A stretch of DNA of 64,000 nt from Pocillopora damicornis (lineage: Eukaryota), in the NCBI RefSeq assembly GCF_003704095.1, contig NW_020844363.1, positions 744,001 through 808,000 on the forward strand. Reading direction: 5' to 3'. The translations under genes were made by a program, and so were the position numbers. The notes beneath the pieces are model-generated. The model ran no database searches. It was given only the letters and a program-made list of their open reading frames with translations, and was not told where the DNA came from. Positions 32,301 to 35,592 of the stretch are shown piece by piece; position 1 is the first letter of the stretch; each line of letters begins with the position of its first letter.

Positions 32301-33881
32301 AAAGCCAGTTACTGGCATTCTACCTATGCCTGTAAGACTTCTTGCTGTTGCCTGTTTAGCCTGTGGTCAAGCTCCCATGTTTGGTTTTGCTTACAACCCA
32401 TTTTTCCAAGCACAGCTTCCTATTACACCATCAGCAGCCACTTATGAAAAAAGTTATAGAAACAACCTGATTTTGTACTGCCTTTTTTTAAAGATTTTTT
32501 AACAACAGTTTTCTCTGCACAATAACAATGCTTATTACCATTTTCAATAACACACAAACTATGAACCATGAAAGAACAAAAAGAATAATTCCCTATATGC
32601 TCCAAGGCACTTAGTTTGATACAAGTAGAAGATTGTGAGAGATTGCAAACTATGGAATAGGAGATGCAACATTGGGAAAGTGTTTTACCTACTGTTAATC
32701 ATGTTTCTGAAATCTGGGGAAAACATGTGCCATGTTGCATTGGGTTCAGAGGGTCGTGGTTGGATGATTATAATCCAATTTGTTTCTGCTTTTGAGCACC
32801 AGTTGTGAAGAAAAATTAATAGTAATGTGAAATTAAATTTCAAATTTTACTCTGAGGCTCAGAGTTCACAAATTATTGGACAGGCAGAGAGACACTTGTG
32901 TTACCTTAGGACCTCATCAATGTGATTTCTATACACTCCTTCAAGATTATCTGATGGAAAACCCATTGCCACTATATTTGGTTTAATATCTGGGAGACAA
33001 ATTAGTTAAAGAACAAAAACACATGATTGAAGCACCATTGTGACAAAAATGTTAAAATGCTAAATCAATAATTACTTCTCATAACCTCTGGAAGCTCAGG
33101 ATTGATTAAATTATCACTTCTCCTTGAAAAATTAGAAATGTTTAGCGAAACTATGCATTTTTTACAACAGATTCACCACTAAAAATAATTCTTAAAGAGT
33201 TTTTATATTTGTTTCAACTTCAAGGATATTGTACAGTTCAAACAATCTTACAGGAAAGCGGAAGCTTGTAAAATATCTTAGCAACTAGACAATATTTTGC
33301 TGAGTCGTATCTAAGCCGTCTAAGCAACGGCCCCAGAAATAAGTAATTATGCAATGACGTATGAGAAATACGATGAAAAGATTATTTCGATTTTACGGAA
33401 AGCTTAAATGAAGGAGAAAATCAAACACCAGAAGCCGAGTTAAATACGCGACCCCGATTAAAGCAACTGCACAGATTACAAGATTGCCCAGCACAGATTC
33501 ATGTTGAACGTACGTACCAATCGATAAGCAGAATGTAATGGTCGATCTTTTGCGAAGAGCACAGAAAATTATTAATACCCCTGAAAACTTCAAATAACAA
33601 TTTAGCTCAAAGTGAAATATACAAGTTAAAAAAAGAGCCCTGAAAGACCCTTAACTTCTACACCAATTCCTCGACACTGCAACGGTTGGCTTGTGAAATG
33701 ACCACTGCAGCGCGCTTAGTTTAGAGATCAAGTAGCTGATGTAAATACGTTCTTGCTATTAAACATAAATACGCACGGCCGTATCATTAGTGCAAACAAG
33801 GATACATGTTAAATCCAAATCAAACCCATCTTCCTGAAACCGCCGTTTCTTCTTACTCACGAGAGCTTTGAAATATGCCAT
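26347..33881 (-). CDS. PTEN: PTEN lipid phosphatase, isoform A; exons 33881-33806, 32989-32905, 31910-31866, 31362-31319, 30751-30621, 29797-29551, 28194-28136, 27517-27416, 26972-26778, 26622-26347
   Basis: [44 protein letters not shown]-loop HCKAGK|[16 protein letters not shown]2 domain [25 protein letters not shown]. Exons 2-4 are 85/45/44 nt, as in human PTEN. All phases consistent. Confidence 0.96.
28515..28725. mobile_element. TTAA-flanked ~210-bp MITE (piggyBac-type) in a PTEN intron
   Basis: Perfect TIRs ttaaccctttaactccca / tgggagttaaagggttaa. Confidence 0.85.
28869..29057. mobile_element. ~190-bp foldback MITE in a PTEN intron
   Basis: aacaattggttcatatgtcagc...gctgacatatgcaccaattgtt; nearly the whole element is an imperfect palindrome. 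Confidence 0.75.
32990..33013 (-). other. U12-type branch point (TTCTTTAAC, 33013-33005) and AG acceptor of PTEN intron 1
   Basis: Minus strand reads ttgttctttaactaatttgtctcccag|AT. The branch motif is one mismatch from TTCCTTAAC and lies 13 nt before the AG. Confidence 0.85.
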
Positions 33882-34073
33882 CTCAGAGGGTGACTGTTAT
33901 AGAGTGAGTTAACGAAAAACTTCTTGAGCAACCCGCTTCTGTTTGTTAATTTTGGCTCTTCCTCCGCTGACACATGCTTCAATGATACCTTCACCGATAA
34001 TTATGTCAGTAACTGCAGAATTCTACAGTACATTACGACAATTAGGCCAGACAGACCATCACATATCATAGGT

Positions 34074-34088
34074 TGGCCGCCATATTTG
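34074..34088 (-). promoter_or_regulatory. YY1-like motif (CAAATATGGCGGCC); probable proximal promoter of PTEN exon 1a
   Basis: Lies between the exon 1b donor and the exon 1a ATG, in a CpG-retaining region. Confidence 0.45.
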
Positions 34089-34227
34089 AGGCATGCCGAG
34101 GGTGCTCACCCAAATATGGTCTCATACAGAGAACTGGGCCAGAATCCCGAAACCCTCGTTGTTTATACCCGCAATCACCCGCAAGGTCAAAATTCGAATT
34201 ACTTCCTACGTTTGTGAAGAAGGATAC

Positions 34228-34315
34228 AAGTTAGATCAAGGTCAAATCCATCATCTGTGAATCTTCTTTTTTCTTTGCTGACACAGTGCTTCAGAATTTC
34301 GAAAATGATTCCCAT
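34228..34315 (-). CDS. PTEN: Alternative first coding exon (1b) of PTEN: [29 protein letters not shown](Y)
   Basis: Paralogous to exon 1a, same phase-1 end followed by GTATCCTT. Upstream acceptor ttctctttccttcag| at 34334/34333 and upstream donor AAG|gtaagt at 34672/34671. Confidence 0.85.
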
Positions 34316-35592
34316 CTCGACAACGACAGATTGCTGAAGGAAAGAGAAATTTACCACAGACTTAAAAAAGTATCAGATAACTGAAGCTATACAAATAAGG
34401 GGGAAATTTTTAGCGCTGACAGCGGAAGTCCATTCTGTCGGTGATTTTGTGAAAAAATATCATGGACAACGAAAATCGGGGAAAGTTTAAAGCGAAGAAC
34501 GGAAATTCTTATTGCTTAGCGATAATGCGGAACAAACCTGTACTGTAAAAATAGTATTAACGGAAGTACGACCCATATTTGACCTGAAGTCTGTAAAAAT
34601 TTAATATGACTGCGTTAAATCAACTTGCTAAAAAGGGAACTTTTGATATTTTAATTGCCTTCGATACTTACCTTTGATTGTTGTGAGTTCTGTAAATATT
34701 CCCCAGAAACTTCTCAGTGCATCTGTGAGTGTACTTGAATAAATGGAGTCTTGGATCCAATCTTCAGTGTTTATGTAGATCCTCGTTTAAGCAAAAATTC
34801 TTGGGAATTGTATCTCGATCGTGTCGTGAACGTGTAACTCCGCTAAAAATCAAGACAATTTACGCTTTTTTTCCAAGCTGATATTTACCACAGTTATTTC
34901 AAGTCATTCACTGGTAAATACACTGAAAATAGGACAGAAAACCAGGCGAGACCAAGGACTTGAGCGAAATTATAACCTAAATGTACGTTCACTGAATTTT
35001 TACCTTTCCGATTGCTTTCCTACGTAACTTAGTAACATTTAAATTTGCATCAACACATTTGAGTTGTTTTTAGCAAATTAAAAGTTCTATAACCTTCCTT
35101 CAAAGTTCTAGAACGTGACGGTCAGATGACTCGAAACCAAAAACACTGCGTCAGGAAATTAATATTATCATGATATTTAGTAGAGCATTACATCATTTAA
35201 AATGCGCTTCAGCCGGCTGATCTTGGGAATTTGATCTGTTGCACCACTGTAATGTGTGAGTTGGAAAGAGTCCTACAGGGGTATTCCCCAAGGAAAATAT
35301 AAAAAAAAAAGTCAGAGAGCACTACGTAATGATATTCTTTTTTCACCAACTGTGACCAATTATGAATGACGTGTCTTGATCGTCAGCAATTCATTGTTGC
35401 AGTTTCATTTTTTTTGTTTTTATAGCAAGATCAATTTCCAATCTTCTAGAACAGTCCGTTGCTCATTTTTTTAAACAAATTCTCCAATCTTCAAGAAACT
35501 TTTTTTATGTCACGTTCCTCGTAAACTAGCATTGAAAAAATTAAACGGCTGTGAATATATGAAAATCATCTTTTTGAACTGCGGATAAAGAC

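Follow-up and report, generated by a model that had tools for sequence, protein, structure and literature searches.

Does PTEN in stony corals begin its protein in two different ways, and if so, how are two beginnings joined to one body? The question is raised by a 64-kb stretch of the Pocillopora damicornis genome (contig NW_020844363.1, positions 744,001 to 808,000; hereafter the window, in whose coordinates all positions are given unless another locus is named). An earlier note, made from the sequence alone, had described here two tandemly duplicated first coding exons of PTEN, 1a and 1b, each with a donor of the U12 (minor-spliceosome) type and both facing a single acceptor. PTEN is a central regulator of growth and lipid signalling, and its N-terminal basic segment controls membrane binding. 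We find that PTEN of stony corals does have two duplicated, alternative first coding exons, each with a U12-type donor and joined to the same exon 2. Taken as a whole, the best explanation is a tandem duplication in the coral stem lineage that gave the gene two transcription starts and two PTEN proteins, an account to which we assign a probability of about 0.85.

The gene lies on the minus strand, and all of the exon coordinates, the phase and the U12-type donors that had been proposed were confirmed there. Exon 1b (34228-34333) has its ATG at 34315 and encodes 29 codons plus one nucleotide; its final base, 34228, is followed by GTATCCTTC. The coding part of exon 1a, 25 codons plus one nucleotide, runs from an ATG at 33881 to a final base at 33806, which is followed by GTATCCTTG. 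Both exons end in phase 1 directly before GTATCCTT (34220-34227 for exon 1b, 33798-33805 for exon 1a), and the spare T of either copy forms a Tyr codon with the AT of exon 2. The N-terminal basic motif reads KKKRR in exon 1a and KEKRR in exon 1b. Exon 2 (85 nt, 32905-32989) is the sole acceptor exon shared by the two; it starts at 32989 and is preceded by TTCTTTAAC, a U12-type branch site (33013-33005), and then by 15 nt ending in CAG. The motif GTATCCTT occurs three times on the two strands of the window, two of the occurrences being the ends of exons 1a and 1b. A count of three is unremarkable (it was reached in 25 of 100 shuffles); the informative part is the position. In a search of the whole genome (234.35 Mb, 4,393 contigs) we found a single exon 2, as had been supposed, and just two copies of exon 1. 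Matches on two other contigs (C1899 and C3923) were weak (E 0.1-0.4), that on C3923 contains stops, and both were rejected as PTEN exon paralogues.

RNA data were taken as Logan contigs from four runs of four studies, three of which are recorded as RNA and one of which (X5) was only guessed to be RNA. Every joint reported in the PTEN gene was GT..AG on the minus strand. The joint between exon 1a and exon 2 (33806/32989) was present in all four runs, and the joint between exon 1b and exon 2 (34228/32989) in two runs from two studies (X1 and X13), so that both of the predicted junctions occur among the contigs. Upstream of exon 1b, a U2-type intron of 338 nt (34334-34671), with a pyrimidine tract before its acceptor, separates the exon from a non-coding leader exon (34672-35128; its 5' end is undefined, with contigs reaching 35128-35202). 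The U2 acceptor at 34333 and the candidate leader donor at 34672, both picked out beforehand from the sequence, were joined in contigs of three runs (X1, X13 and X5). A single 592-nt contig of X13 (record 23) runs from the leader exon through exon 1b into exon 2, of which it contains the first 29 nt; it matches exon 1b without mismatch and covers the leader from 34672 to 35128. Record 8 of X1 extends the leader exon to 35202. An in-frame stop, located exon by exon, lies within the leader exon 21 codons upstream of the 1b ATG, and therefore this ATG opens the frame.

Contigs carrying exon 1a stop upstream at 34090 (X12) and 34068 (X13), which puts the 5' UTR of this exon up to ~34068-34090, given that contigs do not show true RNA ends. 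These stops fall in a block (34058-34099) that is conserved in three corals and contains, at 34083-34077, the YY1-like ATGGCGG that had been noticed as a possible promoter motif; the block is likely to be the core promoter of exon 1a. In X12 the depth is zero at 34100-34299, leaving exon 1b uncovered. A separate start for exon 1a fits these data, because the exon 1a contigs end at 34068-34090, X12 has no depth over exon 1b and the promoter-like block is conserved.

Database proteins were reached by searching with the catalytic exon and then reading the N-terminal regions of full-length matches. RefSeq carries exactly the two predicted peptides: XP_027037995.1 (P0284, 423 aa) starts with the 1b peptide and XP_027037996.1/7.1 (P0282, 419 aa) with the 1a peptide, and both are encoded on one contig. 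This supports a pair of PTEN isoforms, 419 and 423 aa long, with different N-termini and an otherwise common sequence. Proteins of the PTEN cluster bear the NCBI name PTEN and have the domains PF22785, PF00782 and PF10409 (PTEN_C2). Further 1a/1b pairs are XP_058970064/65, XP_022789179/82, XP_020612581/82, XP_074618312/13, XP_073234447/48 and a pair in Porites harrisoni; the models for P. lobata and P. evermanni are of the 1b type, and XP_044174863 and XP_067053660 have a 1b-like start. The XP_0227 accessions are presumably Stylophora, and those in XP_044, XP_067 and XP_0746 presumably acroporids. The protein database search found no 1b-type N-terminus outside the coral group. Both isoforms are thus already modelled in RefSeq, and the architecture is described in no paper that we found: our search returned none on PTEN, corals and the minor intron together, and none on this arrangement in corals or in PTEN of any organism.

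One further protein model has a different start. RMX50825.1 (P0285, 436 aa, GenBank) joins an ATG inside the intron between the leader and exon 1b (34537-34575, minus strand) to an acceptor at 33893, thereby gaining a 17-residue extension ahead of the 1a start; CAH3117693.1 of P. meandrina starts likewise. The model looks wrong at its 5' end, because no RNA joint for its upstream donor was present among the contigs of the four runs.

To date the second exon, we compared the locus with those of two other corals and two sea anemones. The same layout, with both donors and the branch site, is found in Porites lobata (L005) and in the coral assembly GCA_002042975.1 (L006; presumably Orbicella). In each, the last base of a 1b-type exon is a T directly before GTATCCTT, and the exon is preceded by a U2 acceptor and its pyrimidine tract. 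A 1a-type exon with the same ending lies 0.47-0.63 kb downstream, and a single exon 2 follows TTCTTTAAC, which is placed 12-15 nt before the AG. Exon 1b, whose fate in relatives had been proposed as a check, is therefore kept in both species and is not degraded. Nematostella (L007) and the anemone assembly GCA_001417965.1 (L008; presumably Exaiptasia) have one 1a-type exon, with the same donor and a U12-type branch site, and no second copy of exon 1 within 10 kb upstream.

When exon 1 was left out of the tree, the corals formed one clade (support 99/98) that was sister to the anemones, and proteins bearing 1b fell on both sides of the deepest coral split. The latter argues that the duplication is older than the common ancestor of the stony corals sampled; it probably came after their divergence from sea anemones. 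Exon 1 of the anemones is almost the same as exon 1a. In the three corals (alignment A1) the ATGGCGG block is found 202-224 nt ahead of the 1a ATG, and both anemone genomes have ATGGCGGAC at -219/-220 from the exon 1 ATG. Because of this near-identity and the block held in common with the anemones, we take exon 1a to be the ancestral exon with its ancestral core promoter, and exon 1b to be the derived upstream copy. In the GCA_002042975.1 coral, the exon 1a frame is open for >40 codons upstream of its ATG (L006, ~10290-10490), and a transcript-derived protein of 458 aa (P0156) starts at an upstream ATG in that frame. This may point to a third type of N-terminus in the lineage concerned, or simply to a 5' UTR that is open.

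The duplicates also bear marks of selection. Exons 1a and 1b are of unequal length and share 60% nucleotide identity, and their likeness ends at the exon start and just past the 8-nt donor. Across the 18 alignable codons, 20 of 54 nucleotides differ and 3 of 18 residues. The same number of random substitutions would be expected to change ~12 residues, and three or fewer changes arose in none of 100,000 trials (P < 1e-5); chance similarity was rejected. We judged selection by tests of this kind and dropped the Nei-Gojobori method, there being more synonymous differences than sites. Between coral species, 20-25 of the 87 nucleotides of exon 1b differ, with 7-8 residue changes where 13.5-16 were expected (P ≤ 0.001); the adjoining intron has ~50% identity between corals, that is, it is not alignable. 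Between-species constraint on exon 1a is stronger than on exon 1b. Within and between species, then, the comparisons point to purifying selection on both copies, in agreement with what the earlier note had surmised from the two exons alone.

We propose that a tandem duplication in the stony-coral stem lineage copied the first coding exon together with its U12-type donor. The downstream copy, 1a, would have remained a true first exon and kept the ATGGCGG core promoter; the upstream copy, 1b, would have become internal, with a new upstream promoter and a leader exon joined to it by an ordinary U2 intron. Each copy would be spliced from its own GTATCCTT to exon 2, by way of the one U12-type branch site and acceptor there. 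When transcription begins at the upstream promoter, exon 1a would lie inside a long U12 intron and be removed along with it, because exon 1a has no conserved acceptor of its own. The gene would thereby yield PTEN proteins of 419 and 423 aa, identical except for the basic, lipid-binding segment at the N-terminus. Both the two separate transcription starts and a functional difference between the isoforms are what we infer from the data above.

Several observations weigh against this proposal. The RNA support consists of assembled contigs, not raw reads, so that levels, strand and transcript ends are not readable from it, and the short side of the U12 joints in these contigs is just 29-30 nt. The absence of exon 1b from anemones covers two genomes and 10 kb upstream. 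Among the minor small nuclear RNA (snRNA) genes, the U4atac match (G000:C1657:22543-22664, E 4.7e-6) scores 52.2 bits against a cut-off of 53, i.e. 0.8 under. As to splicing itself, the 1b to exon 2 joint is absent from the contigs of X12 and X5; X1 also joins the 1b donor at 34228 to 33893, 12 nt before the 1a ATG; and record 28 of X5, after the leader joint, is unspliced from 34333 to 33806, keeping the interval between 1b and 1a. It had been claimed that the 1b transcript must bypass the internal U12 donor of exon 1a. The X1 joint and the unspliced X5 contig show that the bypass is not absolute.

The last three observations favour an alternative, in which exon 1b is mainly a regulatory upstream open reading frame (uORF) or a non-productive exon and the 1b protein a by-product. 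Upstream transcripts would mostly retain exon 1a, the 1b frame would end early and PTEN-1a would be poorly translated. Use of the 33893 acceptor does end the 1b frame, at a TGA (33885-33883) that stands 1 nt ahead of the 1a ATG, and a branch-like TTCGTTAAC (33916-33908) sits 14 nt upstream of the acceptor AG. The site is, however, a minor internal one (33893-33916) that was used in run X1 only; in the locus comparison, neither the acceptor nor the branch-like motif was conserved in Porites lobata or the GCA_002042975.1 coral, and we rejected it as a conserved part of the system. The unspliced contig is to be expected if minor introns behave here as they do elsewhere: they are spliced slowly, so that some U12 introns should still be unspliced in poly(A) RNA (PMC3728624). 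Moreover, the whole 1b peptide, including its GFDLDLT end, is kept on both sides of the deepest coral split, as are the phase-1 boundary and the donor. Selection on the end, phase and donor of exon 1b argues that it is read into exon 2, and we consider a mainly regulatory or non-productive role unlikely. Separately, since the 34228 to 33893 joint leaves the TGA just one base ahead of the 1a ATG, translation could terminate and re-initiate there.

A second alternative accepts two protein-coding exons and places the difference in the machinery: the introns would be U12-like yet removed by the major (U2) spliceosome, with the donor kept for some other reason. The GT-AG termini would fit this, and PTEN intron 1 has turned U2-type in C. 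elegans (PMC9459249). Against it, the donor GTATCCTT after both exons is a perfect match to the U12 5' splice site [G/A]TATCCTT, making it a perfect U11 site and a poor U1 site. The 1b donor is identical in the three corals, and the same donor also follows exon 1 in the two other corals and the two anemones. For the branch site we looked for a TCCTTAAC-like motif, ~10-20 nt before the 3' splice site and pairable with U12 snRNA. The motif TTCTTTAAC lies 15 nt before the AG in P. damicornis and 12-15 nt before it across the three corals, and the coral U12 snRNA segment GAGTAAGGAAAA pairs with it with one G-U wobble; the anemone branch sites before exon 2 are TTCCTTAAT and GATCTTAAC. All four minor snRNAs have matches in the genome. 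Those for U12 (100 bits), U6atac (104.6) and U11 (92.7) are above the Rfam cut-offs, and the borderline U4atac match (L010), the only candidate in the genome, is probably a true but divergent gene. The position of the intron, after GFDLDLT and in phase 1, is common to all coral and anemone loci read, and we take the boundary of human PTEN intron 1 to be phase 1 as well. The orthologous first intron is documented as a minor intron from human to honey bee (PMC9459249) and counts as a known conserved one (PMC9459249, PMC3728624). Given the donor match, the pairing with U12, the minor snRNA genes and the published class of PTEN intron 1, both coral introns are predicted to use the minor spliceosome, and removal of both by the major one seems very improbable.

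Finally, an assembly artefact, with a second exon copy produced by a mis-join or by a collapsed or duplicated haplotype in a fragmented assembly (4,393 contigs; N gaps occur in other parts of the window), is refuted by the divergence of the copies to 60% identity and different lengths, by RNA contigs that span the exon 1b-1a region and by the same two-exon layout in two other, independently assembled coral genomes.

The second N-terminus is longer, more hydrophobic and less basic than that of 1a, and the 1b type keeps a hydrophobic-acidic stretch (I.E[FI].K) before a somewhat weaker basic motif. Lipidation through Gly2 and Cys11 had been raised in the earlier note, and this suggestion did not hold up. 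Gly2 is missing in three 1b-type proteins (P0166, P0167 and P0297), and Cys11 occurs only in Pocillopora and Porites, with Arg elsewhere. The residue five after the Gly is Glu, which misfits the PROSITE myristoylation pattern. Because neither Gly2 nor Cys11 is conserved, lipidation of 1b through either is unlikely. We can offer only as a tentative idea, and a rather doubtful one, that 1b is a coral-specific isoform with altered membrane or nuclear targeting, its output being set jointly by an upstream promoter and by the two U12 donors competing for one acceptor. If true, PTEN dosage and isoform choice would be sensitive to minor-spliceosome activity, for example under stress. Human PTEN is linked to U6atac activity under stress.

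The remaining PTEN exons occupy 26350-31910 on the minus strand. Those at 31910-31866, at 31362-31319 and from 30751 downward are backed by RNA joints, exon 2 being connected to them through 31910/32905; further coding pieces lie near 29797, 27560, 26980 and at 26650-26350. The phosphatase P-loop, HCKAGKGR, is divided between the exons near 30620 and 29797. Downstream of PTEN and tail-to-tail with it is an open frame resembling a ubiquitin-conjugating enzyme (21138-21983, plus strand). In Porites lobata (L005, 27786-34808) and in Nematostella (L007, 19210-25518), PTEN is followed by UQ_con, PLA2G12 and 60KD_IMP in the same order, and the PTEN neighbourhood seems to be conserved between corals and sea anemones. 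On the other side of the gene, at 35500-36100, contig depth rises to hundreds to thousands in the four runs, with many contigs, loose ends and opposite-strand joints; a highly repeated element that is transcribed probably lies here, immediately before the PTEN leader exon. Farther upstream, two open frames of ~285-293 aa on the minus strand (42045-42923 and 45463-46311) are highly alike, their starts differing at few residues, and look like the products of a tandem duplication of an NHL-repeat-like gene. Between the two is the window's third GTATCCTT (45111-45118, minus strand).

That selection has kept a second N-terminus across the stony corals sampled implies a genuine division of function in PTEN. 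The locus would also be a natural case of two identical U12 donors in competition for a single U12 acceptor, the outcome being linked to the choice of promoter. Minor splice sites are rarely used in alternative ways, and well-conserved examples are therefore useful models. The practical value is modest, since annotation pipelines already yield both isoforms.

How does this arrangement compare with known systems? The nearest relative is intron 1 of animal PTEN itself, which is in the same gene and at the same position after GFDLDLT, with the same phase 1, the same donor type and a TCCTTAAC-like branch site. The two sea anemones retain the single-exon state of that intron, whereas stony corals, compared with other PTEN genes, have two copies of exon and donor that compete for one acceptor. 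Diversity at the N-terminus of PTEN has a vertebrate counterpart in PTEN-L/alpha and beta, whose extensions arise from upstream non-AUG starts on one mRNA, and in vertebrates the PTEN N-terminus governs membrane and subcellular targeting. Coral PTEN differs in that nothing is added in front of a constant start; the first 25 residues are replaced by 29 others through exon choice. The gene resembles those with alternative promoters, a widespread layout in metazoans, in which two sets of 5' exons lead to a common second exon and the downstream first exon lies within intron 1. Different 5' exons do converge on one common exon here (32989/33806 and 32989/34228). Unlike the usual alternative first exons, the coral exons are paralogous, share their encoded motif and would both be spliced by the rare U12 route.

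The closest precedent for duplicated U12-donor exons sharing one U12 acceptor is exons 6a and 6b of JNK (MAPK8/9/10), which are tandemly duplicated, mutually exclusive and located beside a U12 intron (PMC1874599). These too are homologous and alike in phase; each has a U12-type donor, they share one U12-type acceptor, and they give two protein variants. The two JNK exons, however, are both internal and have a common upstream exon, whilst the coral exons share none. The choice in JNK is enforced by an unspliceable intron between the exons, with a U12 donor and a U2 acceptor, together with splicing factors (PMC1874599). In coral PTEN, exon 1a is by comparison probably a first exon with its own promoter, and has no conserved acceptor, so that the choice would be made largely by transcription start, and the interval between 1b and 1a, unlike the JNK inter-exon intron, can be spliced to 33893, as in X1. 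The coral pair thus lacks the combination of two internal exons, shared flanks and an unspliceable interval that defines the JNK type. We regard coral PTEN, on solid grounds, as a fresh and moderately interesting instance of known mechanisms.

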